In this document: positions 24,947-59,762 of the stretch, one piece after another
Position numbering within the stretch: position 1 is the stretch's first letter
Layout: every line of letters begins with the position of its first letter
Assembly (NCBI GenBank): GCA_016748015.1
Contig: JAAOMT010000561.1
Coordinates: forward strand, 194,026-258,025
From: Geosiphon pyriformis uo1
Lineage: Eukaryota; Fungi; Glomeromycota
Length of the DNA stretch: 64,000 nucleotides
Direction: 5' to 3'
Position numbers and translations under genes: made by a program
The notes under the pieces: model-generated
What the model was told of the DNA's origin: nothing
Database searches by the model: none
Seen by the model: only the letters and a program-made list of their open reading frames with translations

Positions 24947-25102
24947 TGTCTAATCTCTGGTTTTGTTGCGGTTGTAGTACGCCATACAGCAAACGAACAG
25001 TCTACCTTACCATTCTTTCTCCTAGTCGCTTCCAAGAAATCGTTTATCAATAATTCTACTTAACCGTTATTAGATTGGACGAAAAGAAATTTTCAAAGTA
25101 AA

Positions 25103-27586
25103 ATGTGTTTCACCAGCCAGGATGTTAACTATCTTATATATCGATACCTAGAAGAATCAGGTCTGGTAAAAATATTTTGACTTCATCACACGTCTTAATG
25201 GGATCAAACGGTTTCAGGAATTGCTCATGGCTCTGCACCTTGTTTTTTTTTTTATTTATTAAAAAAATTTCAGACTTCAAACACACGAAATTTAACCTTA
25301 AAAACGAATCCGCGCTTCGAATTGAAGATTATAATGCCGCAGACGTACCACCTGGAAGACTGATAAGTCTACTTCAAAAGGCCCTCCAATATATGGAGCT
25401 TGAAAAGCATGCTAATATTGAAGTAAGAAACATACAAGTGTAATAATATTTTTTTGTGGGGTTCCTACTCGACATTTTAATGAACCAATTTTTATAAAAA
25501 TAGGGAACACAAAATAAATGCTCTGCCCCATTTTCAATAGTTGGGCCTACTCATCAATGCGAAATTTCGCATCTACTAATCGAAGATAAACCAAAGAATT
25601 CAAAAAAGCACAAGCGTGATGAAAGCCCTCAGATTAGTAATAAAAAAGATAGAAGAGAAGAAAGACGAGGTCCAAAGGACCAGCAAAATCGAGAAAGCCG
25701 AGCAAAGGATACCGAGTTAGGTCAAGATCAATTCCAAATTAACAATGGCGATAATCTTGACATTGATAGAGTTCCCCTTGCGGAAATTCCATCCACTGCG
25801 GCTTCAGGTTTGTAAACTGAAATTATTCTAGAAATTAAAAATTAAGTAGGGAATATTTCCCGTATATAAAATAAACTGTCTGCTTTTATTTTTCCGTAAG
25901 GTAACGAATCTGGTTTAACACCAGCTCATCAAGTATCCGAGGATTTAACTGTGCTACGTGGACATGAAATGGAGGTTTACGCATGTGTCTGGAATCCGGT
26001 TAACAATCTTTTAGCCACTGGGTATACAGTCAAATTTTATTTACGATTTAATTTGAGGTTATTATAGTAATTAATTGGGTATTTTTTTCTTCATAATAAA
26101 CAGAAGTCGTGATTCGACTATAAGAATATGGAATACAGATCAATTAAAGGGTCCAGAGCACAAAAGATCCGTTGTATGTCGAATTGACACTAGGGAGACG
26201 GAAGTTCCCGTAACCTTTCTAGATTGGAATGTATGTTAAATTTATCAACATTATTCTCAAAGTCATGCATATATAACTTTTTTATTAAAACAAAAATTGG
26301 TAGCATCTAGGAACTCAACTTGCAGCAGGTTATTATGATGGTAGTGGCCGCGTTTGGACACAAAATGGTAGGTATATTTAATTCAATCTCATTTTTTTCA
26401 AATTTAATTTGGCTAATAAAAATTGATTTGTTTTCCTAGGCGAGTTATTATACGAAACGCAACTCCACACAGCTGCTGTATTAGCTTTTAAATGGGGTAA
26501 AAAAGAGAAATATCTTCTAAGTTGTAGTCTTGATGGTGGAGTCATTCTCTGGGATCCCCAACTTAACACAAAAAAAGTGTTCAACAATCATACAGGTAAT
26601 TTAAGGATTTTATGTTAGAGATCTTTTACAGTGAGATCTAATTTTTGCTTAATTTATTTTTTTAGTGGCAGTTATGGATGTTGCATGGAAAAATAAAACC
26701 ACATTTGCAACTTGCTCGAAAGATAGCAAGATTGTAATATGTGACATTGAAAAAGAACAACCAATTATGTGTTACGTTGGACATACAAACGAAGTCAATG
26801 CAATTAAATGGGAAAGCAATGGAAATTATTTGGCATCGTGCTCTGATGATTGCACGGCTAAGGTATCAATAATTTAGCCATTAAGAGAGCAATTTGATTA
26901 AATATGAGACTGGTAAATTCATTTTTTTTAACAAAAGATTTGGTCGGAGAAACCCAACGCCATCAAGACTTTTAGGCATGATGGTAAGGTTTTCTCGATA
27001 AAGTGGTGTCCCAACCCAAGAAGAAATACTCGTATTCTGGCCACGTAAGTAAAAAAAAACATATATTTAGTGAAAACCTGAAGTAGGTAATCAAAATATT
27101 GTAAATTTTGCATATAGAGTATCTTTTGACCTATCGGTAAGATTATGGGAAGTAAATTCTGGAACCTGCCAGCATCATTTTCGTTTCCAGGACACTGTTC
27201 ATTCTGTGGCATTTACACCTGACGGTACATATATTGCCACCGCTTGTTTTGATCATACTAGCAAAATATTCAGTGTTAAGGTATAGTTCCTAACTGAAAA
27301 AAATCTTGAGTCTCTGATTTTTTAATTATAATAAATTAATGCATCCTATTTATTGATAGACTGGTGCTTTGAAAAAAACTACCCATAATGGTGGGGCCTT
27401 ATTTGAGCTCGATTTAAAAACTGCCCAATCGACGGAACGCGAGCGCAAGTATAAGATGGCATCGGCAGTTTCAAATGGAACAGTAAGTGTTTTAAAAAAA
27501 TATTTTTAAATCTTAAAGATCGCAACCTCTTACTTTGCTTTATTTTTGATTTGCAATAGATCACCCTCCTCGACTTTCCTCAATAG
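25103..27586 (+). CDS. SIF2: LisH + WD40 repeat protein, TBL1/TBL1XR1/Sif2 family (Set3C/NCoR histone deacetylase complex subunit), multi-exon
   Basis: MCFTSQDVNYLIYRYLEES LisH, VPPGRLISLLQKALQY, LRGHEMEVYACVWNP, GHTNEVNAIKW...LASCSDDCTAK. About a dozen GT-AG introns. Last exon ITLLDFPQ*. Confidence 0.93.
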
Positions 27587-29363: not shown

Positions 29364-30104
29364 ATGTTAATTTTAAGAAAAATGGCAGAAAAAAGATTTT
29401 CAATCTTCAAGAAAAACTTTTCATCATGCCAAATAATTAGTTTAAACTCGATGGAAGTACTTCAAGATATTCAATTCTGGCCAACAAATGAAGAGAAAAC
29501 CAAACCACCACCACCACTACCACCACCACCACCACCACCATCATCATCATCATTATCATCATCATCATTATCATCATCATCAAGTCCTATTAAAAAATAT
29601 TTCCGATTATCAAAACAATTTCTTGAAAAATGTAACAACACATTTTCAAATCGTAGACATACCTATCCATCGATAAATTTTTTCGATCCAACCCATCGTC
29701 GTCCTGAAACAGAAGAACATGTTTCATTTTACTCTGCTCCACATCTAATTAATTCTTCTTATTCAATCAGAATAAATATTCGCATCTGGTGGGCAGCAAC
29801 CATCTCGTTCAACATTACACTTTCCCGTGATTCTACATTTGAAGAATTTACGAGATTAATATCAGATTATATTGGATATAAGATGCCAAAAGATTTGAAG
29901 GTTCTTTATAACGCATCATTAATGACAAGTTCAGACCGAGAAGAATTGTTTAATAATGGGAATCCAGAATTTGTGAAATTTTTAACATCACAATACAAGT
30001 TAAGACCAATTTCAAGTGAGGAAGATTGGACTAGTTTTATGAAATGGTTTAAAGATGAGATTGAAGTAACTCTATTTGCAGAATCAAAATTAGTGTACTT
30101 TTAA
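29364..30104 (+). CDS. Uncharacterised protein, paralogue A (Pro/Ser-rich + conserved C-terminal beta-grasp/PB1-like domain)
   Basis: Intact 246-aa ORF with CpGs retained. C-terminal ~110 aa aligns with paralogues B-D. Confidence 0.85.
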   Translation: MLILRKMAEKRFSIFKKNFSSCQIISLNSMEVLQDIQFWPTNEEKTKPPPPLPPPPPPPSSSSLSSSSLSSSSSPIKKYFRLSKQFLEKCNNTFSNRRHTYPSINFFDPTHRRPETEEHVSFYSAPHLINSSYSIRINIRIWWAATISFNITLSRDSTFEEFTRLISDYIGYKMPKDLKVLYNASLMTSSDREELFNNGNPEFVKFLTSQYKLRPISSEEDWTSFMKWFKDEIEVTLFAESKLVYF

Positions 30105-30253
30105 ATAATATTTTTCTCTTTTAATAATTAATTAATTAATTAATTTATCATTAATGATACTAGTATAATTGTATAAAAAAAATAATTAACTTTTTATTGT
30201 CATATATACATACATACATATATATAATATCAAAAGTATTTATAAAATTTTAT

Positions 30254-30255
<2 letters not shown>

Positions 30256-30314
<59 letters not shown>
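30256..30314. repeat. (AAT)n microsatellite
   Basis: Perfect AAT run. Confidence 0.95.
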
Positions 30315-30316
<2 letters not shown>

Positions 30317-30786
30317 GAATGTGTTAAGAAATTTTAACTTAATATAATTGTCAATATTTATTCATATAACACAAATAAACCATAAAGCTATATAAATTGG
30401 AAAAAGAAAACAGATAATAAAAAGATAAATAAATATATATATCAGTAATTTCACATTTTTTTTAAGTATTTTAAATATAAGATAATGTTAAAAGTATCCG
30501 AAAATTCGTTAAACTTTTTCTTCTAAATCCTTATAATATTGTAATTCAAACCAGTTTTTAGATGAAAAGCATAAATACTAAACAAAATTTATTTTAAAAG
30601 AGAAGCTTTAAAATTTGAACAAAATTTTTTTGTTCATTTATTCTGCTAAAGAATTGAAAGTTATGAAATTTTTTGAAAATATCAATCAAAATATCAAGGA
30701 TCATAATTTATAATCTTATTTTATATTTTTTATATAAAACCTTACCCATACCATACCATACCATATCATACCTCATCTTACATAAT

Positions 30787-30840
30787 TAACTAAATAACTA
30801 AATAACTAAATAACTAAATAACTAAATAACTAAATAACTA
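30787..30840. repeat. (TAAATAAC)n 8-bp tandem repeat
   Basis: About 6 perfect units, preceded by a short (ACCAT)n run. Confidence 0.9.
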
Positions 30841-31168
30841 ACCAAATAATCATCAAATTAAAACTTTTACCGTTCATTCATTACCAAATGATTACATGGA
30901 ATTCTTTATTTCTAAATTCTTAAGAAACTTTATCGTTAAACATGTGAAATAAACATCGTAAGAATCATAAAAAAGAATCGGTTGAATCGGTTAAACCAGT
31001 TACACACGTATTAAAAGACTGTTTAGAAAAAAATTCGTCGTCGTCGTCGTCGTCGTAATCAAAATAAAAAACTGTATGCAGTATAAATTAAAATTTTAAT
31101 AAATTTTATGTGGGATGCCTTTTTTAATTTTAAAAAAAAAATATATCGAAATTAATTATTCATTATAA

Positions 31169-31258
<90 letters not shown>
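31169..31258. repeat. (AAT)n microsatellite, ~30 units
   Basis: Perfect AAT run. Confidence 0.95.
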
Positions 31259-32733
31259 TAATGTTCCCCAATTTATAAAACAATAAAAAGAACTAACCAT
31301 GAGAAAACTTTTATTTTTTTTGATGGCTTTGTAGCCTCTTTTTGGTTAACACCAATATATATATATATATATGTATATTTTTTCAAGTTTGTTGGCCATT
31401 TTAAAGATTATCACCTTTGCGAATCTTTATTTAATCATGCTGATGTAATATGATATCCCTTCTATTGTTCATGATAAAATATCAAGATCAACAAAAAACC
31501 AAAATTTTTTCTTTAATCCCCTCCCTCACTTTAAAATTAAAAGACAACTCATTTTTAAAAAATTCCGATTCGTCATCATGCCATCAAATCATTGGCAATA
31601 AATAAATAGGGATTCAAGAATAATTAGACCATTGTAAAAAAAAAATTTGATACTGATAATTGAGAATTTATTAATTTAAAAAAGCATGCAGTCAATTAAT
31701 ACATTTCGTATTTCTTTTGAATTATCAGCTTTTAGACAGATTTGTCGAACAATACAAATTCTTTTTTCGAACGATCAACATTAATTCCATAATAATAATA
31801 ATAATAATAATAATAATAGGGGACTCTGGATATTAGTAATTTTTTAATTAGGTTCTGGGATCATTCAATATCAAAACAGATTTTGGATTGATTTTAAATC
31901 AATCTGGCATTACAAATTTTTTTTGTAAAACTCTATGCTCAAACAACTTTTTAGAAACTTTTCTCGAAAGGTTTTCAAAAAATAGAAAATTATTCAATGT
32001 TAGACACCATGTCTTTACTGCCTTTTAATCTAAACTGAACAAAAGATTTAATATGTTCGCGGACTTGAAAACTTTTGTATTTCCCCCATTTGGAAAAAGA
32101 ACATGTCATTCATAGAAAACTCTATTTTTGTTCGCAATAATGCAGTCAAAAAGGGAGGAGGAAGAGAGATGCGAAAAAAAGGTCAAACAAAAACTCAATG
32201 CAGCCAAATGTTTGAATATGAATGTTCTAAACTTTTCGAAAGTTACCTCGCATAAAGATAAAGCTTTTGAACAATAATCCATTAATGATTGACTCCTCTC
32301 CCATCAAGTGGTTTCATTGTTTAAAACATCACTAATCTTATTTTGTCAATAGTCCCAGCGCAATACTTTTCTCAATTATTGTAACCAGAATCAGAGTTTC
32401 TGCTTTCCGCATACTCTAAAAGCTTGGATGCATCCGAAATTCATACAATGAGAACCCCTTCTTTGTTTGATTGCATTGGAACTTTTGATTAATCGAACCT
32501 AAATTTTGGTCGACTTTTTCGATTTTATTGTTTTTGAACAGAGGCAAAATATCATTCAAAAAAGATGATAAAAAAGCGTGGTGGATGGTGACGATAGAGT
32601 CTTCCAAATTGAAAAAAAACATGACCGTACAAATTGAGTAGAAAATAAAATTCCAAAGACAACGATTCATTCCTTAAATTGACAAATCGAATTAATTAAA
32701 AAAAATTTTTTTTTCCTAAAACATTGTACAAAA

Positions 32734-33756
32734 ATGCTTCGCCAATTCTCGGTATTTGACAAAAAATTCAAATTTGATGAAGAATTTGAAAACGTTTATT
32801 CCAGCTCATATAAATCCACCACCACATCAGACCCAAGACCTGAAAAACTTACCGGAGCTCAATTCTGGCCCGTTTCCTCACCAATCACTTCACCAACATC
32901 TGCAGATGGGCCAACTTCATGTCTTTCACCAAATGATGAATATCAGAAACAATCAAGCCCTGTTCAAAAGATTTTTGGCAAAATCATCAAAAGGCTTAAT
33001 CAAAATGATTTATTAAAACGTCGTGGTTCAAATTGTAGTCAGATAAGTGTTGAGAGTGTTGAGTCGGTAGAGTCAATGCAAAGTTCCAATTCTTCAGAAG
33101 GGGTATTCAACACTGATTATTTGTCACAAACATCAAAGTCACAACCACCACCATTATCATCACCACCATCACCATCACCATCACAGCCTCCACGATTGGA
33201 AGGAAAGAAAAAAAAAGCCTCAAAGAACAAGCGAGTGATTAAAAAACTCCCACCAAAAATTATAACCATGAATCTCGGTAATCACAGTATACTTCTCGAA
33301 GATATTCAGCATCCACCACCAAATTTAATAGCACGTTCGAAACATCACAGTTTCTCATATCCCCCTCATCTACTTCAACATCCTTACTTATCACCAGACG
33401 AAAAAACAATGTTTCCTGTCACTCTTGTAAATTTTTCTATTTACCTTTACTGGGCTTGGCCACATGCTATCCAACTTTCACTTCCTCGTACCACTTCTTT
33501 GTCACAATTTAAAAATGCGGTTTCACGTGAACTTGAATATCTGCTACCAGCTGACTCGGTGGTTTTGTGTCACACAAAAAAATCTCATGGAGAAAGAATG
33601 AACAACACATTAAAAGGGAGCATGTTGCTGCAGTATTTGATTTCGAACCATAAAATTCGGATGGTAGATTCGGATGCGGTTTGGGGTATTTGTATGCTTC
33701 TTTGGCCAAAAGATGTGGAGGTCACCATTATTTCAAGATCAATGATAGGGTATTGA
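32734..33756 (+). CDS. Uncharacterised protein, paralogue B
   Basis: Intact 340-aa ORF. QFWP motif shared with A, LKRRGS motif, same C-terminal domain. Confidence 0.88.
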   Translation: MLRQFSVFDKKFKFDEEFENVYSSSYKSTTTSDPRPEKLTGAQFWPVSSPITSPTSADGPTSCLSPNDEYQKQSSPVQKIFGKIIKRLNQNDLLKRRGSNCSQISVESVESVESMQSSNSSEGVFNTDYLSQTSKSQPPPLSSPPSPSPSQPPRLEGKKKKASKNKRVIKKLPPKIITMNLGNHSILLEDIQHPPPNLIARSKHHSFSYPPHLLQHPYLSPDEKTMFPVTLVNFSIYLYWAWPHAIQLSLPRTTSLSQFKNAVSRELEYLLPADSVVLCHTKKSHGERMNNTLKGSMLLQYLISNHKIRMVDSDAVWGICMLLWPKDVEVTIISRSMIGY

Positions 33757-34297
33757 TCTTACGATTGCAATAAAACCATTTTGATAATGGTATCAGTGTG
33801 CTGAATGTACATTTTATTATAATACAAATGAGAATTGTAAATACCATCAATTTCATATATAAAAATATTAATAATTTAATTTTTGACATTAATTTTTAAG
33901 CATATTTAGTATTATAAATTTTTAAACATATAATAGTACATAAATCATTAGCATTTTTAAGTATTAGCATACTTTATTAATAAACTCAACATTTAATTAA
34001 TGGTTATAGGTATAATTCATTTTCAATTATCAGGGTTCAAAAAGTGAAAAATCAAAAATTTTGATATATATAAAAACTGTTCGTATAATGTGTACATTTT
34101 TTTGCAATATAATTGATAGATGATAAAAACATTTTATATTTTTCGTTACACTTTTCTCAAAATAAAAAAGGGTAAAAAATAAGGATTTGGAACAAAAATA
34201 ATAAAACTTATTTTAATTTCAAATTCCAAATATATAAATATATTTTTTTTTAGAAAATATATTCTTGTATTAAAAAAATGGATTATATATATATATA

Positions 34298-35512
34298 CAG
34301 TGTGGGACAAAAAAAATTGGACACAAAAAACTAATTATTGTGCTTTAATTAATGGACCAAATTTTACAAAAAATATATCATTAGAAAGATAAAAAGCACA
34401 TTATTTTATTAAAAAAAATTAATAGAATATTAATATGATATTCTTTCCCCCTTATTCGCAATCACCATCTCACAACGCCGTTTCATTGATCCTACTAACC
34501 CGATAAGGGTAGATCCGGAAATCATCCGCCACTCTTCTTCTTGACAATAGCCAATAGGGTTCAAGTCGGGTGAGTTGGCAGGCCAGTCAAGAACATTATT
34601 AATATTGGCAGCTATAAAGGCTTGGGAAACTTTGCTTTTGTGTTTCGGATCGTTGTCTTGCTGGAACCGCCACCTACGCCCAAGCATTCCTCTAATTTCA
34701 GGCAGGTGAGTACGAAGAATTTCTATGTAAAAATGACTATCCATTATTCCAGTAAAACAAAATAAACTTGTCTTTCCTCCTTTATAGAAACCACCCCAAG
34801 CAAAGACTTTTGTTCGATCTTTTGGAATGGCACGGGTGGGCCGTAAACCTCTATACCAACGCTCTAGTGTGTTCCGGAATAAACAAAAGGCCGTTTCATC
34901 TGTAAAAACAGTTCGGTCCCAATTGTCATTCAAGTGTTGGTAAGCCCATTCCAAATGCCTCTCTTTATGTTTATCAGTAAGCATTGGGATGGCCCGAGGA
35001 AGGTCTTTTTTGTAACCAAGAAATGCTAAATGCCTGCCAATTGTTCTATAGGATACCTCTACATTTATTTTTGACAACTTTGTTGTCAAAGTTCTCGTTG
35101 AAATTGAGGAATCCCGTTTGATGTACGATTGTAATACTCGCGAAGCAACCCCTTTAATCTTTCTTGGCCGACCATTTCCACCTGCATGCTCCACCACCCC
35201 GGTTTTTTAAGAATATTGTAAATAGTAGAACGTGGTATATTTGTTCGCTTCTGTATTTCCGCTGCAATTCGTATTCCTTGGTTCCAAAAATACAATACTG
35301 TTTGTCGTTGCATTTCTTGCTTGGATGTTGCCATTTTCGCGCGAGAATTAAAAAAAAATTAATAAAATGCACAAAAAAAATATATAAGCCAATAGCCACT
35401 TACCTTCGCATTCATTTCCAACTAACCTCGCCACAATCTAACCAAAATTGGTTAAACTAGATCAAATCTTGTAAGATGCATTTTTTTGTCCAATTTTTTT
35501 TGTCCCAGACTG
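34298..35512 (-). mobile_element. Tc1/mariner DNA transposon copy B, 1215 bp, young but internally deleted
   Basis: TIRs cagtgtgggacaaaaaaaattggaca / tgtccaattttttttgtcccagactg within (TA)n. Transposase motifs VFTDE, FQQDNDPKH, WPANSPDLNPI. Confidence 0.96.
34430..35334 (-). pseudogene. Tc1-family transposase, frameshifted and lacking the third catalytic residue
   Basis: Split into ORFs 35086-35334 and 34430-35197. SPDLNPI is followed by G rather than the ENL present in copy A. Confidence 0.88.
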
Positions 35513-35633
35513 TATATATATACTTATGTCTGTGAATTATGGGTTTTTTAATAATAGTAATAATAATGATAAATAGTTAAAAATAAAAACAAAAAAGAAA
35601 TAATAATAATAATAATAATAATACTAAATATTA

Positions 35634-35675
<42 letters not shown>

Positions 35676-36207
35676 TTTTATCAAAAAAATCCAAATTCAA
35701 AATTTCATCTTTCTCAATCTAAAAGAGCGTCCCCTTCAAAAACGCAAATATTTAAATAAGACTATTGCTCATTTTCAAATTGTTTTTATTGTTTCTTTAT
35801 TTAATAAGAACTACAATCTAAATACATATAAAAACATTTGTTATCTAATCCACCATTTATATTAATATACAAATAACAAAGTTTAAAAAATTCAAAGAGA
35901 AAAAGATATTTACTGTACTTTGAGATAAATAAATTCAAACCACATTAGTATAAAAAGATAAAACAAATTATTTAAAAAAGGTTTCTGAAAATAAATATTT
36001 AATTGAGAGGGAACATGAAAATTTGTGATCTCTCGAATAGAAGAGCTTCAGATATATATGAACCAAATATTTAGGGTATATTTACAAAAAGGAGCAACTC
36101 TTCACACATTATTAATACTTTCGAGATCCAATTTATCTCGTCAAAAGAATTTGGTTCTATGTACACGCCGCCTCCAAATCAACTACTGTACATTATCAAT
36201 CGTTTGG

Positions 36208-37221
36208 TTATAGCCGGGATCTTGAAAAAACGGTAACAATAACGGATTCATTCCACCATAACAATGAAGCTCTCCAACAATCATCAATGGCAACACGTGT
36301 CAATTTCTCTTCGGTAACCAAATAATCGACAAAAGCTCCATTTGGTTCAGAGAGCAAAAGTTGAGTTTCTAATTTTGACAAACGACTAGAATGTTTTAAT
36401 GCGACAACATCAGAGGGAATTTGGTCACCGATCGCCTCAGAAATTGTAGACTTAAATTCACGGAAAGATGTATCTCTTGGGATTGTAATGGTAAGTGAAA
36501 TCGAAGAGGACCAGTGAATATTAACATGAATTTGAATAAAAGATGAGAGAGTGATTGTTGAAGAAGAATTCGATTGCAATGGGGAAGGTAGGTTAACATT
36601 CGAAAAGAGAGCTGATTGTGGTATTCTAGGAGAATAGACGGTCGAATTGTCACTGGAATACGAGGAAGATGAAGAACTAGACCATTTAAACCGTTTCGTA
36701 TTTCGACGAAGAAATTCAGCCGCTAATGAGGTCTGTCTTCGTGATGATGATGATGATGATGAATTTAACTTGGGTATCGAGGCTATACTATCGGTGGTTG
36801 ACGTTGAAACTCGGCGCTTCAAAAAATTTTTTGCACCAACTTTAGAGAAAACTTTGCTTAATAATTTCAACTTTTGCTTATCAGTCGTCGGTTGTTCTTC
36901 AATAACTATTTGATCTTCTAGTTCGTATGGAAAAAATTTTTCTTGGTATTCTTCCCAGGAACAAGGATGTGATAAGTCAGTTGGGGATTCACATATTACC
37001 GGAAGACAGGTGAAAGAGGAATTTTTTCGAGTTTCTTTATGAAAAGTGTATTGCCTTTTAAAAGTTGACAAATAAAGGGAAGTCATTTGAAATGAAATTT
37101 CAAGGTTTTCTAGTAAAAAGTAGGATGAGAAAAGTTTTTCGTTTAGTGTAATATAGATTTTCTCATGAAAATATTCCTTCAAGGAGTGATTGATCCTTGA
37201 TGAAAATACGTTTTGATTCAA
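36208..37221 (-). CDS. Uncharacterised protein, paralogue C (true start probably the internal Met, MTSLYLSTFKRQ, ~37086)
   Basis: Intact ORF, Ser-rich, FLKRRVS motif, same C-terminal domain. Confidence 0.85.
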   Translation of the reverse strand: MNQNVFSSRINHSLKEYFHEKIYITLNEKLFSSYFLLENLEISFQMTSLYLSTFKRQYTFHKETRKNSSFTCLPVICESPTDLSHPCSWEEYQEKFFPYELEDQIVIEEQPTTDKQKLKLLSKVFSKVGAKNFLKRRVSTSTTDSIASIPKLNSSSSSSSRRQTSLAAEFLRRNTKRFKWSSSSSSSYSSDNSTVYSPRIPQSALFSNVNLPSPLQSNSSSTITLSSFIQIHVNIHWSSSISLTITIPRDTSFREFKSTISEAIGDQIPSDVVALKHSSRLSKLETQLLLSEPNGAFVDYLVTEEKLTRVAIDDCWRASLLWWNESVIVTVFSRSRL

Positions 37222-39196
37222 AATGTATTTTTAGCTTTTTTGTTTCTCTTTCCTTTTTCTATTAATAATTAACTAGAGTGGATTCCAAACATTGAAAAAT
37301 CTTTGTTTCATTCTACCTACTTATGCAAAATCCTTTTTAATGCAGCATCAATTAACAATTGGTGGGTAATAAATTCATTAATGGTGTTGGGTTTTTGTTT
37401 AAAGAAAAAATGGAAAGATCCATATAGACAGTGATCATTGATTTCACTGTCCTTTGGGCCGCTAATGTTATTATCAAATACTGTCTTTATTTTATTGTTA
37501 AAACTAGTAAGAGTTAAATTAGCGATATTGAAAACAGGAGCTTTCTCAGTTCTAAACTCTTCATTTTTCTATCTTGTAACGGAGTTCTTAGGGCTATTGT
37601 TCAAATATCTCAGAGGGATATGGAAAAACCATCGTTTACTCAAATTTTGGTGAATAATACATTTTTGATGGTGTGTGTGATCTTAAACTGATAGAATCAT
37701 TGATGATAACCAAGATATGATATAATTTTTTGACTATTAAAAAAAGATGCTTAGATCTTTTGTTAAGTACAAGCTAAGATTAAAACGTTTTTTTTTTTTT
37801 AAAGTTTTTTATATTAAACGATGAGAAAGTAAATTAAACGGCGAAAAACAAATAATAAGAGTAAATCTCAAGAAACCATTGTCATTCATAAGCACGCTTT
37901 CTTAAAATTTTCCACGCTTTTTGATTTGATTGATAAAATTGAACTTTAAAAAAAAAAAAAAAAAAAATAGATTTTTCAAAGGCTAGAAAGTGAAACAAAA
38001 GCTCATTTTTCATTATAGATAAAAGCTAAAACATTTGCAAGCTAATTTTTTTGAAAATATTCAATAAAAGTTTTTTTTTTAAAGAGGATAAAAATTTACT
38101 TTAGATTTTCCAAATACAAAAATAATATTAAAAAATTTGAAATTTTACATGTTTGTGAAAAAAAAAAATTTTTTTTGATTCTCTAATGCAAAGACAATAA
38201 AAGATTAAAGTTTTTTTGCCAACTGTTTCAATTTGTACTGTTTCTATCATCGCAATACATGCCTGAAAAATTTGGTCAAACGTATTACAATTTTCGAAAA
38301 TTTTAAACCTTCAAATACTGCTGTGTTATGTATTTTGGCATTAAAGGACATTTCTCCTTTCACTTTAAGGTTGTTTATTAATCAAGAAATTATATAAAAA
38401 AAAATGAAATTTCATTCTTTTCATTTATTCTCAATCCAAAACATAATATCGTAACTCACCTTGCACTTTTGTCACTGCGTCAATTCTGTTTCAATCAATA
38501 AAAAGTCTAATTTAAAATTATTCTAAATGAAAATCTCGTTAATTTAGAATGTTATTTCCTTTCGAGTAACCGGTTCCCAAAGCTAATTTTATTTGATGAA
38601 ATAAGATGCAAGTTTATGAAATTCATGCATATGGGAAAATGATTCAATGACTCTCTTATACAAGATCAAAAAAAAAAACTCATTCACTTTAGAAAGTGCT
38701 TGTTTTACAAATGGGACCACAGCCGTGATTATTCCCTGTTCCTTTATCCAAAACAAATCTGTATAAAAAGGGAGTTTCAGGTGTCAACAATCAATCAATT
38801 AAAATCAATCAAAACAAATCAAATCAAAATCAAATCAAATCATTAATGTTGAGTAAGAGGTAAATCAGAATCAACTAGGAAATATGGTTTAGTAGATTTC
38901 TGCATCCAGTAAACAAAAACTAATCGGATTTTTTAACTGAAAAGCGGCGTACCCTATTTAAATTTGGCCCAATACTAATAAATCACTCGCATAATTTCAT
39001 GCATCACGAGTAAATCAATCAATCAGGAGGCGTACACCTTTACAACCATTACCAATAAATTATTATAGTCATTATTGAGACATTTTTAAGACTAAGCACG
39101 CTTTCCTTTTTCCTCACTTTTGTTTCTCAAAAAATATATTGAAAGACAAACCTTATGATTTTTTGATTTTTTTCCTGGCAAAAATCTTTTGGAAAA

Positions 39197-40039
39197 ATGA
39201 ATTTAATTAATGAAAAATTTAAAGAACGCCAAAAACAAAACGACGATGTTTTGAAAACCACGAAATTAAAGATGGTTGGAACACCAGCAACTGGCATTCT
39301 TACTATTTCAAGTTCTATAAACGAACAATACAATCAGGAACAAAATACATTTCATAATGGAAGCTCACCGACAACTCCGATAAAAAGTTTTTTTGATACT
39401 GTTTTGGCAATAGTTAAACCTGAAAGTGTTTTAAAACGAAGTGGTTCAAGTTCGAGCTGCAGAAGTAATTGCTCAAATAAGGACAACCAAAAAGAAGGAA
39501 ATTCAAATCAACAGATACGTCACAAATTTAAAAGATTAAAGCGGTTCAACTCGACAAAATCGTTAAAATCCAGCATTTCCAACCCTAACTCAACAACGAT
39601 AAATTCAAATATTGAACCAAGTAAAACAGCTCTTAAACGATCTCCATCTTCACCACAACTTCATCAACAAAAATTCAACTCTACGATTACTCTAAATATT
39701 CATCTTCATTGGGATCGAAACACCTCATTTAACCTTACGTTTCCACGTGGCTCATCGTTTCAGGATTTTAAACGAGAGATTTCGTTAAAAATCAAACAAA
39801 GACTTCCTGATGATTTGGTTGCTTTGTATCATTGTTCGAGTATGACCGAACTAGATGATAAGTTACTGTATACAGAGAAAGATCCAGTATTTATTGAATT
39901 TTTGTTAAGACAAGAGAAGATGAGGAAAGTGGATAGCAATAAATGTTGGTGTGCCTCATTGTTATGGTGGCGGGATGATGTTGAGTTGACCTTGTTTGCT
40001 TTATCACAATTAGAAACTTTGAACAAAGTACGAAACTAG
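39197..40039 (+). CDS. Uncharacterised protein, paralogue D
   Basis: Intact 280-aa ORF. TPIKSFF...LKRSGS motif, same C-terminal domain. Confidence 0.88.
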   Translation: MNLINEKFKERQKQNDDVLKTTKLKMVGTPATGILTISSSINEQYNQEQNTFHNGSSPTTPIKSFFDTVLAIVKPESVLKRSGSSSSCRSNCSNKDNQKEGNSNQQIRHKFKRLKRFNSTKSLKSSISNPNSTTINSNIEPSKTALKRSPSSPQLHQQKFNSTITLNIHLHWDRNTSFNLTFPRGSSFQDFKREISLKIKQRLPDDLVALYHCSSMTELDDKLLYTEKDPVFIEFLLRQEKMRKVDSNKCWCASLLWWRDDVELTLFALSQLETLNKVRN

Positions 40040-42250: not shown

Positions 42251-42512
42251 AAAACTGATATTATAAATTAAATTTTTACAAATTTAAAAAATATTTTGAA
42301 TAAAAATTTTAATTTTTTTAAAATATATTAAATTTAAAATAAAATAAATCTTAATATATTTGATAATTTTTTAATATATTACTTTTATTATTATTGAATA
42401 AAAAATTAAAATTAAAACTTCTTTTTCTCTTACATTCAAAAAACCCCAACAAATACTTTTCTGAAAAAAGTTTTTTTTTATTTTTTCTTGTTAATACTTT
42501 ATCAATATTTCT

Positions 42513-44396
42513 TTGTCTAATAACCCTTTTGTTGTGGATTTGGAGGCTGCTTCAGGTGGCAACATGTCTAAAAAGAGGACGCTTAAGGGTGTTTTTCATG
42601 GTCCTGCTGGTGGTTCTTTCTCTCAGAAAAAAAAGAAACTTCTTGGCAATGTTAAACACTCTGGCAATGAGAAAGATATATCTCTGAAGTCTGGTTCTGG
42701 TACTGGTTCATTTTCTGATGTGGATAGTCTATCTGGTGATAATGAAAATATTAGTATGTCTGGTGATTTTGATGGCTCCCTCTTGGATTCGGCTGTTAAC
42801 ACCTCCAAGACTAAAAGAGTTAATACTAGTACGAATTTTGGTTCTCTCAACTTTGAAATAGATAAAGAGATAAAGCCCCTCCCAGCCTCACTCAAGAAGA
42901 AGATTTCTTTGGATAGAATTTGGGTTAATCTTAAGATAGTTAAAACTCCTGTGGAAGTGGCTGTCAAGAAGTTTTTTGCTCTAGATATTAATCTCTCAGC
43001 TGTGGAAGGAAAATTGGATACATCAAAGACCTAGTTAATCAAAAAACTTTTTTCAAAAATCAATGGTTTTGGGGGGACCACTACCTCCTCAAAATTTAAA
43101 GAGATCATTTGATTGATGTTTACTTCTGAAGAAAGCATAAAAAAGGCTGTATCATTGGCTGCTGAAAATGGAATCAGCATAAACAGTGATCTTAGAAAAC
43201 AAGGAGTGCATTCAGATTGGGCTGTGATTATTAAAGAAATTTCCATAGATATGTCAAAGGATATAATTGTCACCACAGTTATTGAGTTTGGTGAAATTAG
43301 GTCGATCAAAATTCAACTGATTGGCATGTGGCAAAAAGCAGTGGTAGAGTTTGCCGAATTGGGTCAGGCTGATTGGTTGGCTCTTAGATAGTCATTCTTA
43401 ATTAGGAAAGATTCTGTGCACATGGCTAAGGCTGTGGAAAATTGTGATATCTGGGCATCAAGGAATCAATTTAGGATGCTTTTGTTTACTTTGCCAGTAG
43501 GGACAACAGTGCATAATCTTGGCTCACTTTTGGAAGCTGCTGGTAAGAAGACTTGCATCATCAACCAGTCATTGAAAACAGGTAATAGATTTCGCTGTGT
43601 GGTGGTTGGTTTTGGCTCTAATGCCAATTTGGAATCTGTTTTTTGTACTGAGCCTATTCTTGGTAGTGTTTGACTCTTATAGGCTAGATTGGATTTGGTT
43701 CGGTGTGGAAAGTATGGGCATTTTGGTTATTCAGTTCTAGAGTGTAATGTGTTGAATGTGTCATCTTTTGAACTCTTGCTTTCATATAAAAAGCCTTCTT
43801 TTGGTGCGAATCATCTTCAGTTGGCTCAATTATATGCCAGAAAAAATGTTTTTGTTTCTCGGCCGGCAGCCTTTGGTGACAAATCTTGGGCTCAAGTAGT
43901 TTCTTTTGCTTCCTCAGCTGGCCACCAATGTTTTGTTTCTAGTTCCAGTTCTGGTTTTTTCTCCTCAGATTACTCCAATTTGGGTGCTAACAGACCTATC
44001 TTTCCTGTTGACATTTCTTCTTTGGATTCTTGTTTGGCAGTTTTGGAGTGCTCTATGGAGCTTTTGGTAGATTGGGTTTCTGACTTGGTGTGTAAACTTA
44101 ACAACTTGGACTTGGTGTCTTTAGGTCCCTCTCTATCATCTAGTGTTGTAGCTCTTCCTTCAGTTTCAGGTTTGGATCTTGGTACAGATATGGTTTTGGA
44201 TGATTCTGTAGAGGTCCTTCTGTCTCCTTCTGGTGGTTTGGGTTTGGGTCCTAACAGTTCAAAGGTTTTGATTTCCAAGGTGGATCTTCTGGAATCCAAG
44301 TTGGTAGCTTTGGAGATCTCTATTAGTTCGGTTTTGATGAAGTTAGATCTGTTGTGTACTGGTTCAGGTTCTCATATTCAGTCTTCTTCTCAATGA
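42513..44396 (+). pseudogene. LINE ORF1 (RRM-like region + decayed CCHC knuckle)
   Basis: VIIKEI...EFGEIRSIKIQLIGMWQKAVVEF and CGKYGHFGYSVLEC. Interrupted by point stops. Confidence 0.8.
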
Positions 44397-47300
44397 GCAA
44401 TTTGATCTGGAAGTTTGCTACATGCAACATTGGTGGCATCAATGTGCCAGCTAAGCAAAAAGATGTGGTGTGTTGGCATGTAGAATCTGGGAATATGGTT
44501 TCAATAATCACAGAAACAAAGTTGAGATCAAGTGTTAGACCTTGAATTAAGGACAGATTTGATGGGGTGCATGTTTTTACTTCTGGTCTTGACAAGAGTT
44601 TTCTGGGGGCCAGGATAGCGATTATTATGAACAATTCTTTGGCTCGGCATATCTCTAAAATGGAAAAAGTTCCTGGTCATGTTATTTCTGTTTGTCTCCT
44701 TTTTAAAGACAAGGTTTCTGTTTCAATTGTTGGCTTGTATACTGGCACTTCTTCTGGTGTTAGATTTGGTCTTGCTTTTGAAGTCAACTCCTTCTTGGCT
44801 CATGTAGTCAACACCAGTAGTTTTGTTGTTCTGGGTGCTGATTTCAATGAGGATGGGTCTAAAAAGAGTGCAAGCTTTGGTTTTTGTTCAAGTTTGGGTC
44901 TGGTCAATTTCTTTGGTGGTTATTCCTTGGTTGAAGTGTCCACTTGGAGTAACTCAAAAGGTGTGACCAAAGTTATTGATTACATTTTTGTTAGTGAGTG
45001 TCTGTTGTCAGCCATGGCTGGGCGCAAAGTTGACTCTGTGTCTAAATTTTTTGATACTGATCACTTGGCTGTTTTGGTTTTTGTTGGTTTGGGCAGTCTT
45101 CTGAATGTTCACATAAGTAGTGTATGTAAATAGGCTAATAGAGATTGGTAGAAGTTCAAATTGAAGGGTGTGGATGATATTGGATGGAATCATTTTAAGG
45201 AATGTTCCTTAAAAAAGTTTATGGTCAAGATGGTGAAGTTTGCTAATATGAAATGTAGTGGCAATTTGAATGCAATGTGGGAGATTCTCAAAGAGGTGGT
45301 GGTGGATTCTGCTAATGCTATCTTTTCCAGGCTTTGGTTTAGTAAGTTTGATTATATGAGGAATAAACTTTCATCGAAGTTTTACAGATTGGAATTGCTG
45401 GTGTCCAAGATTGCCAAAAATCTGAGCTTAGGTTTGCACTTGGTGGCTGACTACTTGGTTGATGTTTGGATGTCTGTTGATAATGAAGAAGCTTCTAAGG
45501 TCTGCCTTATGATTGATGATAGGGTTGAGACTATGGTCATTCTGCATCACATCTCAGTTGTCAAAAAAAGATATCAATAATCCAAGTATTATGAGTTCAA
45601 AGTTGCTAGGGATAACTCTATCAAAGATGCTGTGAAGAAATGCATGGAAAATTTTTGTTCGGACAAAGAGAGAATAATTAGGAATATTTTGGATCAGCCT
45701 TTTAGGAAGGTTGTGCTAGATCACTTGATTGTTGATGATAAGCTCATCTTGGAACCTTTGGAGGTTAAGACTTCTATTAACACAATTATGGAAGGTTGGA
45801 CAAGGAAGCACCTGGACTTTAGTGTTAGTGCTGGTCGCTAGTCTGATCAATATGTTCCTTTGAGTTACATCAATGATAGAGCTTTCTTGGGTGTTATGGA
45901 TGCTATTGATATGAGTGAATTTTTGTGGGTTGTTGGTGATTTACCTGATGAGAAGACTGCTGAACTTTCTGGCATCCCTAACAAACTCTGGAAACATGGT
46001 GCCCCAATTATTCTTGATGGTCTCTTGTGGGTTTTTAATATGTGTTTGGTGTTTGTAATGGTTCCCGACCTTTGGCAAAAATCCTGGGTCTCTATGATTT
46101 CTAAGCCTTATGATTGGGAGGGTGCTTTAACTAACACTAGACCTATAACTTTAATTGAGACTGTTTGGAAGATCTTGTCTAAGATCATTTCTGACAGAAT
46201 TGCCTCAGCTTGCAGCAACTTTGACATTTTACATGGTGACAATTTTTCGGTATTGCAAGGCACTTCTACACAAACTCCCATATTTGCTATTGGTTCGGTT
46301 GTTGAGGATGCTCTAGAGAAAAACAGGAAGTTGTAACTGGTTCTTCAAGATATGCGCAAAGCCTATAACTCTGTTGGTTGGTTTCATTTGCTCAGTAGTC
46401 TAGTCAAGATCAAAATGTGTCCCCACTTCATAAAATTTTTTGGAGGCATCCACAACAATAGAGTCAATCAGGTCATAACAGATTTTGGCTTGACTGATGG
46501 CTATGTTGTGCATGATGGCCTAGATCAAGGGGAGGTGTTTTCACCGCTGCTGTAGAGAATTTTTTATGATCTGCTGCTCTGTGAGGTCAAGAAATATGAA
46601 CAATTGTATGACTACAGGATGTGCTCTAAGTTTTATACTAGATCTGGGAAACCTGACCCTGGGAATGCTTTAACATCCTTTTTTGCTGCAGATGCCTTTG
46701 TTGATGACACAATCTGGATTGGGAACTGCTTAATGGCTACTCAGTAGATCCTTGACATTGCCAGCAAGTTTTTTTCTTTTAATGATATCTTCATAAACAC
46801 TGAAAAAACAGTTGCTATACCTATCAATCAGGGCATTTGTGAGGCTGTTTTGCATATTAGTGGTTCGAGGATTTCAGTGGCCAAAAAAGGTAAGCCTCAT
46901 AGATACTTGGAAATCTTTTTGTCGACTGATAGTTTGGCCAAACCTAGTTTAGCTAAGGCCCATGATGATGTAAGATTTTTTTCAAATGTGATTCTGAAAA
47001 AAGCTATTACCGAAAAGCAATTCTTATATCTGGTTTCTGTTGTTTTACAACCTATCATTGGATACCAACTTCAGTTCAGCTTTGCTTCAAAGAGTATATG
47101 TGGAAAATAAGACAGTATGTTATAAAAAGTTCTTAAGCTAAAGGCTAATTTGCCTAAAGACTTTCCTAATGAAGCATTTCACTATTCTGAGTTTTATGGC
47201 CTGAGAACTTTTGAGCAAGTGCTCACTAAGAATCTGATGGCCAATCTGGTGAAATTTTCTAACATTGGCAGAATTCTCAACAGATTTTTTGATCACAGAG

Positions 47301-50058
47301 CTATGGATTTACAATCGGCTAGTTGGATGTCCCAGCATCCTCTTTTTTTTCCAGTCTGATTACCCATTTTGTCTATGAACTGTTTTCTGGCTGATGCTAT
47401 GCGTGCTCTCATGTTATGCAACCTGTTCTTGAGTAGTACTTTTCCCAATGTTTTTCATGTTAGAACTGGTGTGCCTATCTTAGACGTGCTGGGCCTGGAT
47501 GGGTACCTAAATGTGGTAAAATCGCTTAAATTTTATGGTTTAGTTTTTACTGCCCAAATGTTGGATCATCATGGCATGTGTTTCAGTTGGTATGCTTTTC
47601 ACAAATGGAAGAGGCTTAACTTGAGAGGTCCAGTCCCTGTATGGTTCATGTCACTTGCCAATTTTGTTGAGAGTGGTGTTTTGGGTAGAGCTCTGATGTC
47701 ACATTCAACTCAAGTGAACTCTTTTTGTGATGTTGGTTTTGTTGCTGAACGTTTGATCACTTCTGGGAGCAACTCTGTTGAGGTCTATACTGACAGTTCT
47801 GTCAAGGGTTTTGGCTTCGTCAATGTGTGTGGTGGTGCTGCCGCCTATTTTCCAGATGCTGATATTAGTATTGACATGCATGTTCATGACTTGTTGTCAT
47901 TAACGTTGGTTGAATTGCATGCTATCGCTTTGGCTTTGGAGTGTGTGCCTGTTTTTAGTGTTGTAATTTTATTAACTGACAGTCAAGCTTTGCTAATTAT
48001 GTGTGATTTCAGTTCAAGTGCATCTAATCCTAATTTTCATTACAAATGCTGGATCAAGAGAGAACATATTTGTCATTTCATTTCAAGTAAGAAATTATCA
48101 GTCACATGGAGAAAGGTTAAAGGATATTCGGGGGTTGTCGGGAATGAGTGAGCTGATTTTTATGCTAATGCTGCGGTTTGTTCTAAAATTTTGTTGCCTC
48201 TCAACATGCCGTATTGCTTCCTTTGTGTTGAGAATAAACCTGTCTTTGGGAATGCACATTGTTACCAGATGAAATTAGAGATATTATTTAGCATAAAATT
48301 ATCTTTATAATCCCTATTATTAATTAGCATATATTATTGTTTCAAATTATCACTTATTACATTAGCAAAATGTCTGAAATTATCATTTAATTAATAACCT
48401 AATTTGCACATAACATAAATGTAACCTAATTGTGATGATCAATCATGCAATATCCCGAACTATGTAACATTCAAAAAGTTTGCCAAAATTTGTAGAAATT
48501 CACTGAAATAATTGATAGTTCACCGAAATATCTAATAGTTTGCAGAAATAACTTGTAGTTTGCCAAAATGTATCTTTAGTTCAGCAAAATTGTAGAAAAT
48601 AGCAAAGTTCAAGTTCATAGAATAGTGTTACAACAAGTTGTATAAAAGAAAAACTTTTCTCTTCGAGAAAATATATCTTACTTCAGATTTAACAATTAGA
48701 ATCATCATTTACACACAAAAACAAAATAAATATCAAATAATTCAAAAAACCAAATTCTTTAAATTATTGCACTTGGAAAATTCTTAAAACCCAACTAATG
48801 TTTTGAAATTGATTAGCTACCAATTTCAATAAACTGTTAGTAACTCCAGGCCTGAATCGAAAACAATTTCCTTGACAGAATTCAATTTTCTTTTACATTT
48901 CTTTTATTTTTCTTTTATTTTCTTATTATAATCATTAGGGTAACTTACAGACAAGATTTTTGTAAAAGAGTTGATTTTTACAGCAAAATAACTACATATT
49001 TTTAGTAAGCTTCCAGATGAGCAATTTTTGGAAAAGAGTTGACATTTACTACAATGTAACTACACAAAGCAACTGGCATGGAATTGGCCATTCCACTTAT
49101 AAGTCCAGCAGTTCAAATTATAGGAGATAATTAAAGATAAAATTCAGTTATTGGAGGTTCAAACACTTTTCATAGTCATGAATTAACAGCATTACAACAA
49201 ATATACAAGAGCTAAGAAGAGACCAAAAACCTCCAGTAACAGTGTCACTTTGTCAAGACTTTGTTTAATTCAATAAATTATGTCGGATGGGAGTCTAAAT
49301 ATGTGAGCAGTGTTGTTGGGGTAGGTGCTTTTGCTGATATTGATATGGGCAAGTCTTTTGGCATTTGGCATCCTAATGGCAAGATTTAATCAGGCTTCAC
49401 CAGTTTGTTTTCAGCTTCTTTGCATTCCTACTTGTTGAAAGCTCTGCATTATTGCCTGCCAGTCACCATGAGAAAGAGACTTTATAATTCAAAGTATTCT
49501 AGTGTGCTGTGCATTAAATGTAGTATGACCGAAGATTCTGATCACGTGTTTCTATGTGCTCATGACGACAATGCCAAAAGAGATTTGTTGTCAGCCACTT
49601 GTGCTGATTGGAGTGTGTTGGTGAGTGCTTCTGCTGTCAATGGTGTGGTTGCCCATTCATTAGATAATGCTGTGTCATCTGGGAATTTATATATACTGCT
49701 GGCCAAAGAGTTTGTTTTAAAGGACTGGGTGGCTGATGCTGTCCGGCATTTTGGGTCTGAAGCTGGTGGCAATTTGATCATCAGGTTAGTTTGTAGTATT
49801 GCAGAGAGTCACCGGTCTAGTATTTGGTTGCCTGCAGCTAAATTGAGGTCATTTTATGAGAAGAACAATATTTTGCCCCGAGATGGGTCAGTCATTCCTT
49901 TGGTGGCTGGTTTGTCCTTTTTTCGGCCTGTCGAAGTCATCCATAGCTTCAATGTCAGGTTGGGCATTCACATGTGTTTTGGTTTGTATCCTTGTTTAGC
50001 TAGCTTGAGTTTTGGCTTTCTGAGTCGTTTTCCTGCAGCGGTTCCTATAAGTGTATAG
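44393..50058 (+). pseudogene. LINE ORF2: AP endonuclease, reverse transcriptase, RNase H, C-terminal Cys/His motif
   Basis: FATCNIGG..ETKL, LGADFN, IDYIF, TDH (APE). RPITLIE, QGEVFSPLL, AFVDDT (RT). VYTDSS..ELHAI..TDSQ..KVKGYSGVVGNE (RNase H). CIKC..EDSDHVFLC. Confidence 0.93.
48260..49241. mobile_element. Solo-LTR-like insertion (982 bp) in LINE copy 2
   Basis: TGTTACCA...CAGTAACA termini. Flanks acat/gtgt are explained by a decayed GCGT TSD. Internal short repeats (agtttgccaaaa/agttcaccgaaa). Confidence 0.8.
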
Positions 50059-53000
50059 TGCTACTTTGATTGGTCTGAGTGACCGGTTACATGTAGAAAG
50101 AGCATGAGCCACATTTAATTTATGATCTTGTTTGATTATATGTATTTAGATAGTAGTTGGGCTGCATTCATAAAACTCTAATAAAAAAAAATAAAAAAAA
50201 AATTTAAATAATATTTGTTTTTTAAAAGTTTTTTAATTTGGATTAAAATTAAATCAAAAAATATTAAATACACAAATTTATTTCAAAAATAAAAATAAAT
50301 TATAAAAATACTTTTTATTACTAAAGATTTTATTAGATTAAATTAAAAAATTAAAAATTTTTATGTTATTTATTTAATAATAGATTTTTAAAATCAAGTT
50401 TTTAAAATGTAAATTTAAGAATAATTATAAAAATTTTAACGCTTTAATATTTTATAAATCAGTTAGAAAATTTTAAAATAATTAATTATTGTCGTTATTA
50501 TTTTTGTGAGTTTAAAAATTAAAAATTAAAAATTAAAAAATATATAAATAATATTATATATTTTAAAATAAACAAAACAAAATTAATAATTAAGAATGTT
50601 AAATTTTTAAGATCTTAAAAATACTTAGATAATAAATGTTTACTTTAAATATTTTTTCAAAAAAATAATAAACCATGTGCTTAACATTATACTTGAAAAA
50701 AAACAGTAATTAATGATGCTCAATTATTTGCAATGCATATACCAAGTAATTCTATTAATACAATAGTGTTGATGTAATTGTCGGGTTTTACATTTGGATC
50801 GAAAAAATGGTTTTTCTTTTCATGAGTAAATCTTCATAGAATAATTGCAACCAGGAATAATACAAAAGACACAGGTTATTTACCTTTGAATTTTTGAACA
50901 CATAATAAAAGTTGATATTGGTAAGTTTATCAGTAATATTTTTTAAAAAAAGTAAATTTGACGTGTATTTCAATTTTATAAACAGTGTAATAAAAGCGTT
51001 TTATACAAATTTCTTCAAAGTTAACCCTAAATTTCAAAAGTGGCAAATTGTAAAGACAACCCATTTATTTTGAGAAAGAATGTTTTTAATTAAAAGTGTA
51101 ATTTTTTAAAATGAATTTTTTTTTAAAAAATTCCTCCAATTTCAAACTTTTAATTAAAGCAATATTTTAAACAATTATTTTCTGGTTTAATAATAGCCAT
51201 GGATATTTTAAATACTGATATATTTAATAATTAACATGGCTATTAATTTTTTTTATTAATGCATAAAAGTATAATAGTTTTGTTATCTTTGTTTTGATAA
51301 TTACACATTAAATTTTTTTTTATTAGTTAAAAATTGATATTTTAAAAGTAAATTTTTTAATTTAATAATTTCTTATTATAATTTTTACTTGAATTTTATC
51401 ATTCTAAATTCATTTATTCTATTTTCTTTTGTTTATTAGTTTTTTATTTTAAGTTACAACAATATATTTTATTCAATGGATAAGTAATTATTTTTTTAAA
51501 TAATATTAAATAGCTTTAAAAGTTAAGTTTTTTTAATCTCATATTTAATTTTATAAAGATTAAGTGAATTAAAATAAACTTTTCTAAATTCTAATTGGGA
51601 GGGAATTACTTTGACATATATCTTACAAAAACTTTTAATTATATTGCAATTTTACCTATCATCGACAGACTCAAGTCCCTTAAATCTTAATAGACTAGTT
51701 AACTTAAAAAAAAAACGATTATTCGAATAATTTGATAAAATTTTTTCATAATACTCTTTCCTATTCCTTAATTAATCATTAGAAAAAGAGTGAAACTTTA
51801 TTTTCAATAGCAAATTGAAAGTACTTGAAAAATAATTTTTATTTTAATATAGATAATGAAATTCAAAGCTACGTAATGTTTCAATTAAATGATTTTTTAT
51901 CACTAAATATTATGATATGAAAATTTTTTGAGAATAAATAATTTCTTTCTGCTGTGCTTTTTAATTCCTTTCAATTTATTATTCATGTTTTCAAATTATT
52001 CTCGTCAATGTACCTGTAAAATCAGATGCTGAACCTAAAATTGTAATAATGATTTGTCAGCTAGTTCAGAAAGTATGCTTGTTATTTGAAAAATAAGGAA
52101 AAAAGCCAAAAATTTTTTAACCATTTATCTAAAATAAAAGTTTAAATTCACAGTTTGAAGACCAACAAAAATCAATACTCAAGAAGGATCATTAAAGGAA
52201 TGCGTAGTTGGTGATATTAAGACAAAGTATTTGGGTAGTTGATATGAAGGGGTTCAGGAATTTAGGAATCCTCAATCAAATTAAAGATTCATTAAATCCA
52301 AATCCGTTAGAAAGCAATTTAGGCAGTAAATTGAGGGAAGTCTCTTGACTTCAAAAAAATAGGTTACCTTTATTCGAAATATGAAGTTAAAAATTTTTTT
52401 AATATTTTTAAATTCGTGATACTTACATATATTACTTGATCACAATTGTGATTGGTATTACCAATTAAAATGTATAATTAAAGTTTAATCAATTTACCAA
52501 TGAGAAAAAAATATCGCTTTGATTTATACTGAAATATATTCATCGCCATTACTATGAAAGTCAAGTTAAAGAAGGGGAGGGATTTTAATTGGACCTGTGA
52601 TTAAAATGAATAAATATGGTGTCCTATTAACTGAATACCAAATTAAGCAGAAACTTAACCCTTTGAATATGATCACTAAGCATAATGATAACAAAGAAAA
52701 AGATAAGATGGCATTCAAAAAAGATCCATCAATCGATGAATTAAGATTAAAGCGAGAAGGTTATAAAAAAGACTACAGTACAGTACAGTACAGTACCATT
52801 TACATATTCACTTATAAATATTTCTTTTCAATTAAATTCGCTTTCTTTTTAATTTCTCAATCAACTTCTATATATTCTTTCTAAAAAAAAAAAAATTAAT
52901 TTTGGAATACTAATGTTATTAAATTACTTTTTGGATTTTTATTTTTCTTCGCTTCATTTTCTTTGTCAATGCCGCTAATCAATCTGATACCGTCCTAAAC

Positions 53001-59200: not shown

Positions 59201-59762
59201 GCTTTTGCCAATTTTTTATTATAAATTAAAAGTTTAATTTTAAATATTAAATTTAAATTTTCAATCTCTTAATACGGGATGCATCTACAGATTTGATAAG
59301 CATAATGATAAGCCGATATTTTTATACTTCCAACTCATTTACCTTGAATCAATTTTTACTTTTCATAACAACGTGAATTCCTTGAACTTATGAATTTATT
59401 TCAAAGTAAAGAAGATTGTAAAGAACAATAAAAGTTTTTATATATTTTAAATTTAGAGCGTAAATTTTTATTTTATTTTTTCTGATTACAAGAGCGTTTT
59501 TTATTATCTTTTATCTTCTTGACTACGGGAACTTCATTATTCGTCATTTTAAAGATATCTTAGTACTACTTACTTTATTTTGGGATTGAAATAATATAAT
59601 CCTTAATCAGAAAATCCCTTTTATAAGGATGGAGTTATATGACATTTATTTAAAAGCCTTTTTTTAAGATAAATAAAATAATATATGCAACCAAGATAAT
59701 TCAATTGATTGATATGCTAATTTTACTTTATTTTGAGTAAGATGGATGGCATCACTCAGTAA

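Follow-up and report, generated by a model that had tools for sequence, protein, structure and literature searches.

In a 64,000-nucleotide stretch of the Geosiphon pyriformis uo1 genome (contig JAAOMT010000561.1, positions 194,026 to 258,025 of the forward strand; below, the window), four intronless genes, here named A to D, lie together at 29364-40039, and the question was what kind of protein they encode. The original prediction, made from the sequence, was of a shared, unrecognised C-terminal domain of PB1-like or ubiquitin-like fold and of an undescribed, lineage-specific family of adaptor or signalling proteins. According to the present analysis, A-D probably encode non-catalytic intracellular signalling adaptors of an old family of the Glomeromycotina. 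All four reading frames were open and single-exon, at the predicted positions and in the predicted orientations (+, +, -, +): gene A at 29364-30104 (+, 246 amino acids [aa]), gene B at 32734-33756 (+, 340 aa), gene C at 36208-37086 (-, 292 aa from ATG) and gene D at 39197-40039 (+, 280 aa). The mechanically called frame of gene C begins at a TTG at 37221, and the length given is that from the ATG start.

Each protein consists of a disordered N-terminus followed by a C-terminal domain of about 115 aa, encoded at about 29751-30092 (A, +), 33403-33747 (B, +), 36211-36558 (C, -) and 39665-40012 (D, +). The four domains could be aligned, with pairwise identities of 21-39%. When domain D was searched against the entire genome, A, B and C came back at E values of 1e-12 to 1e-26, far beyond chance, confirming the shared domain, together with two further members, likewise single-exon, located on C59 and C771, two other contigs. 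Wider profiles added none to these six copies; these counts are lower bounds. The predicted helical insert was real, the conserved His and Lys being separated by 26-28 residues in A-D and by 22-39 in the family as a whole, and it was predicted to form two helices. Two tryptophans described as invariant were so in A-D, but not family-wide, where they were found in 25 and 24 of 28 aligned rows.

The range of the family was determined with HMMER, using a six-member profile against 1.84 billion representative sequences. The search gave 29 matches, 27 of them true members; the two weakest (P0028 and P0029) were repeat proteins aligned over short stretches only and were discarded. About 40 relatives are known from five orders of the Glomeromycotina, early-branching ones included, and open frames of the family occur in about 20 species. 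The named members all belong to the Glomeromycotina (Ambispora, Paraglomus, Glomus, Rhizophagus, Gigaspora, Dentiscutata, Cetraspora, Racocetra, Acaulospora, Diversispora and Entrophospora), and the model species Rhizophagus irregularis has a member (for example PKC57951.1). The nearest relatives of the window genes were those of Ambispora, the sister genus of Geosiphon. Five matches were unlabelled environmental sequences, and with this profile no named match was obtained outside the Glomeromycotina. Restriction to this lineage is likely rather than certain, because the sole exhaustive search was made with a narrow profile. A word-indexed search with D alone returned only D itself, and two later ones missed known members, so that their blanks carry no weight. 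The named members were annotated as hypothetical throughout, except for one automatic UniRef label 'ubiquitin-like', and no description of the family was found in the open-access literature, most subscription papers being outside its coverage. As anticipated, the family is unnamed and undescribed; its domain is a novel form of a fold already known, and the family does not amount to a new type of system.

The absence of introns had been regarded as a peculiarity of the cluster. It was confirmed, but proved to be the normal state of the whole family: relatives in Paraglomus, Glomus, Rhizophagus, Diversispora epigaea and both Ambispora species were single-exon, and one Gigaspora rosea gene model had a predicted intron. 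As several canonical PB1 domains of the Geosiphon genome likewise sit in open frames of 260-800 aa, it is also unremarkable in this genome. Public models of several relatives append exons or fuse the gene to a neighbour of Roadblock/LC7 or cyclin-like type (L059:8001-12804, L028:10001-12718, L015:6520-7960 and L029:3124-4250); single-exon frames read cleanly at the Ambispora loci. Errors of the gene models most likely account for the apparent Roadblock/LC7 fusion in Diversispora eburnea and for the apparent cyclin-like extension in Ambispora gerdemannii.

Domain D was modelled with AlphaFold2 from a 28-row alignment (mean predicted local distance difference test [pLDDT] 91, predicted template modelling score [pTM] 0.82). 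The order of elements was strand, strand, helix, strand, helix, helix, strand, helix, strand, helix. A full-length model of the C771 paralogue had the same domain topology and a low-confidence N-terminus. Both models (domain pLDDT about 90) showed the beta-grasp and helical insert that had been foreseen, the insert consisting of two helices and lying between strand 3 and strand 4. The elements of the beta-grasp follow one another as in PB1: strand, strand, helix, strand, strand, helix, strand. The top Foldseek match of domain D was the PB1 domain of NBR1 (E 8e-4). In a wide structure search with both models, NBR1 PB1 ranked first (Z 9.5 and 9.8) and MEKK3 PB1 next (Z 9.0 and 9.4), superposing at about 2 Å root mean square deviation over 77-81 residues, and TBCE, SUMO-like, ubiquitin, ELMO and kindlin domains followed within about one Z unit of PB1. 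Several structural neighbours in the Atlas contained PB1, including Bem1, Cdc24 and NoxR-like proteins. Because the whole lists of matches consisted of beta-grasp domains, the modelled superfold can be regarded as secure, unlike the subfamily: PB1, ubiquitin-like and Ras-binding folds tie structurally in these models. The label 'PB1-like' held for the nearest relative, but not as a structural distinction from the other two folds. No Pfam family was matched at cut-off by the full proteins or the domains.

Binding by PB1 domains rests on an invariant lysine of the basic face, on strand 1, and an acidic OPCA motif (PMC7187202). The intact family was compared with a profile built from ten PB1 domains of the Geosiphon genome, which gave a probability of 13-17%, the 13% of the plain comparison being not significant. 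Removal of the insert raised the probability from 16.6% to 41.5% (score 24.6 over 56 columns), with shuffled columns scoring 9.6 +/- 1.7 and 16.7 at most, whereas the same removal lowered the probability against ubiquitin-like domains from 10.3% to 6.4% (score 17.9). In the profile alignment Y-H-T ... K of the family stands in place of Y-x-D-E-D-G-D of PB1. The first OPCA cluster, D-x-D/E-G-D, which is present in Geosiphon's own PB1 domains, was replaced in all rows by H-T and the insert, as the original prediction had proposed. The ISSEEDW motif, likened there to IxSDEDL of PB1, corresponds to the second acidic site, where helix 2 begins; this residue is D or E in 26 of the 28 rows and N in gene D. 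Other features in common with PB1 (PF00564; NBR1, p62, MEKK2/3, p67phox/NoxR, Cdc24, Bem1) are a helix of full length separating strands 4 and 5, the sequence P-x-x-x-S/T-F at the start of helix 1 and, as in Cdc24, Bem1 and p67phox, the C-terminal position of the domain. A PB1 domain was most likely the ancestor of this domain, which differs from PB1 in its His-Thr and two-helix insert, in three conserved tryptophans and in the lack of any other folded domain in the protein. The best member scored 16 bits against PF00564 (gathering cut-off 23.6), and searches of the genome with PF00564 and PF00788 did not return the family loci. In the hhalign register 11 of the 28 rows, but none of A-D, had K in the lysine column; in A-D the position was occupied by N, S, H and N or by R, Y, N and H, depending on the register. 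Judged by their residues, A-D lack two of the features that define PB1 and should not be classed with it. Head-to-tail binding of the PB1 kind as such is unlikely for them, since the canonical binding faces are missing.

The duplications that gave rise to the cluster are old. In a tree of the domains B, C and D each paired with Ambispora orthologues (support 99/97, 91/88 and 95/88), which were present in both Ambispora species; no orthologue of gene A was found in Ambispora. A, C, D, the C59 gene and Ambispora C and D formed a clade with a support of 100/99 and with B outside it, and a placement of B with A, C, D and F had an approximately unbiased test value (p-AU) of 0.19. Recent tandem amplification was rejected, A-D as a single clade having a p-AU of 5e-7. 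Together with the Ambispora orthologues this tree places the duplications before the Geosiphon/Ambispora split, as their divergence had suggested. That the duplicates were kept together was borne out for B and D, the only linkage found to be old: in each of the two Ambispora species their orthologues were head-to-head neighbours separated by 1.1-1.3 kb (L014:7467-10645 and L029:1257-4236), possibly with a shared promoter. The C orthologue was on a separate contig, away from any paralogue. Inverting the block from B to C would convert the Ambispora arrangement into that of the window. Synteny beside the TBL1/Sif2-like gene, which had been suggested as a check, was not found; in the loci compared, no flanking gene, this one included, was common to the window and the relatives. 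In Paraglomus and Diversispora an Sds3-family gene was located near a family member (L016:5186-6540, L059:16118-17715 and L060:17164-19074), which may be chance because the two genes did not match each other at 1e-10. Gigaspora rosea carried three close copies on one 249-kb contig.

Selection was estimated between A. gerdemannii and A. leptoticha, which differ by a synonymous rate (dS) of about 0.4. The ratio of nonsynonymous to synonymous rates (dN/dS) of the domain was 0.23 for B, 0.085 for C and 0.088 for D, and that of the N-termini about 0.27; all bootstrap intervals were below 0.5, those of the domains below 0.45. The Ambispora orthologues of B, C and D are under purifying selection, and the neutral ratio that would have spoken against function was not observed. 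Values between the window and Ambispora were near saturation and agreed in direction.

The N-termini of the six Geosiphon members contained 28-37% Ser/Thr/Pro. Three short motifs recurred among 31 members, namely FSxFxKxF in 11, QFWP in 11 and RSxxHSxSY before the domain in 12 (0.1 or less in shuffles for each), and persisted across orders. A basic amphipathic helix followed by L-K-R-R/S was recurrent in several members, and the C771 model had a single clear N-terminal helix at residues 76-88. Gene A has FSxFxKxF, QFWP, a Pro/Ser run and the basic amphipathic helix. Gene B has all the N-terminal motifs, including RSxHHSxSY and SPDE directly before the domain. Of these features, only the helix and the basic motif are present in C and D. 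No signal peptide or membrane span was found in the members examined, and a secreted or membrane protein was rejected on hydropathy. A Gigasporaceae subfamily (P0017, P0018, P0047-P0056 and P0021) has an N-terminal L-x-x-I-x-E followed by acidic residues, an arrangement that has the form of a PP2A-B56 docking motif; residues 28-33 of gene C were listed with this motif.

The family of the original prediction is real, its fold, conservation and selection being established by computation, and its anatomy fits that of an adaptor without catalytic activity, for which we infer the following steps. The C-terminal domain would have descended from a PB1 domain and would dock on a partner protein via a remodelled, non-electrostatic surface made up of the insert and conserved His, Trp and Arg residues. 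The basic helix may attach the protein to a membrane or to an acidic partner, the short N-terminal motifs may bind additional partners, and basophilic Ser sites could allow control by phosphorylation. As the old paralogues differ in the motifs retained, they probably serve different partners. Several results weigh against this account. The match to the PB1 profile stayed below 50% and was based on only 10 PB1 rows, the structural lead of PB1 over other beta-grasp families was less than 1 Z unit and thus a tie, and the best weak match in a sequence search of the PDB was not PB1 but the ubiquilin UBL (E 0.1-0.5). The motifs were picked with the alignment already in view, in related rows, and therefore reflect retention by descent and not independent enrichment. 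The amphipathic helix was significant against shuffles in only some members, and RRxS was not clearly above chance (13 occurrences against 6.4, maximum 13).

A more far-reaching form of this reading, in which the helical insert of the PB1-derived domain forms a new binding or polymerisation surface of a membrane-attached scaffold, a Glomeromycotina innovation for hyphal polarity, branching or symbiotic development, appears quite doubtful. If true, the scaffold would be the Glomeromycotina's own, with a role comparable to that of plant SOSEKI. The likeness to SOSEKI and Dishevelled is one of architecture only, a lineage-restricted scaffold on a beta-grasp docking domain (PMC7042713), and the domain of the present family is C-terminal. 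The same paper reports no DIX domains in fungi, and none was among the 50 structural matches listed for either model. The family is a beta-grasp variant that Pfam misses. Many genes of arbuscular mycorrhizal fungi are unannotated, and to our knowledge few of their lineage-specific signalling components offer a structural handle. The family is testable, being small, spread over five orders, under purifying selection and present in Rhizophagus irregularis; its weight is limited by the commonness of the fold.

Among the other explanations, the one that survives best is a working atypical PB1 domain, in which ancestral Lys-bearing members would bind the acidic face of a Cdc24-, NoxR- or NBR1-like PB1 and the second acidic site would serve weak self-assembly. 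The lysines retained in part of the family, the nearly constant second site and the at least 10 canonical PB1 domains of the genome, as possible partners, are in keeping with it. We consider it unlikely, as the lysine is missing from A-D in either register, the DEDGD cluster is missing from all rows and no member reaches the Pfam cut-off. Three canonical PB1 genes of one type were located within 47 kb of each other (C647:420786-467683), with a fourth close relative on C441.

It is rather unlikely that the domain is an effector of RA, RBD or FERM-F0 type, recruited to the membrane by a GTP-loaded small GTPase with the assistance of the basic helix. These domains have the same fold (Z 7.6-9.2; ELMO1 RBD 8.2, talin F0 8.0, plexin RBD 7.9, kindlin 9.2), the RA domain of PLC-epsilon was among the top five Foldseek matches, and the basic residues after strand 2 (Arg in 24 of 28 rows) and in helix 1 (20 of 28) resemble those of Ras-binding domains. 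Sequence likeness was absent, however, with no Pfam RA or RBD match in 28 members, and the helix between strands 4 and 5 has its full 10 residues, as in PB1. The genome gave only three partial matches to RA domains.

Still less probable is an integral ubiquitin-like domain of type II UBL or SUMO-like kind, which would tie the disordered protein to the proteasome or to ubiquitin or SUMO enzymes. Integral UBLs (ubiquilin, TBCE/TBCB, Rad60 SLD2, USP7) share the superfold, and UBL, SUMO-like and TBCE domains matched at Z 8-9.3, within 1 unit of PB1. Weak sequence likeness to the ubiquilin UBL and to Pfam ubiquitin-type models extended over strand 2 and helix 1, Atlas features lay near those of USP7-type UBLs (all below 0.9), and the automatic UniRef name points the same way. 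The match to ubiquitin-type profiles was nevertheless confined to the N-terminal half (PF00240, E 0.17 at best; hhalign 6-10%) and dropped on removal of the insert. The family also differs from these UBLs in its long second helix and helical insert, and none of the C-termini of 31 members had a Gly-Gly after strand 5. Non-functional or transposon-derived frames kept open by chance, to which the Tc1 element and the retroelement debris in the repeat-rich neighbourhood might point, are extremely improbable and already largely refuted by the dN/dS far below 1 in the Ambispora orthologues, by the open frames in about 20 species, by the only six copies found in the genome and by the absence of a transposon domain from the family proteins.

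Between B and C, and outside the family, lies a Tc1/mariner DNA transposon at 34288-35522 (-). Its inverted repeats are intact (42 nt including flanking TA runs, 95%), and its transposase is broken over two frames, 35086-35334 and 34430-35197. The original prediction mentioned neither this element nor the two additional genomic members. A decayed relative of the element seems to be present near 13284-13568. Decayed retroelements, read by eye, are found at 2300-6100 (reverse transcriptase and integrase pieces) and 42500-50100 (endonuclease, reverse transcriptase and RNase H pieces). A multi-exon WD40 gene, in which the WD40 domain was confirmed, occupies about 25100-27500; its N-terminal piece resembles TBL1/Sif2. 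Exons of hydrophobic multi-pass membrane proteins without Pfam match lie at 55100-61500 (-), and a BTB-domain gene starts at 63707-64000.

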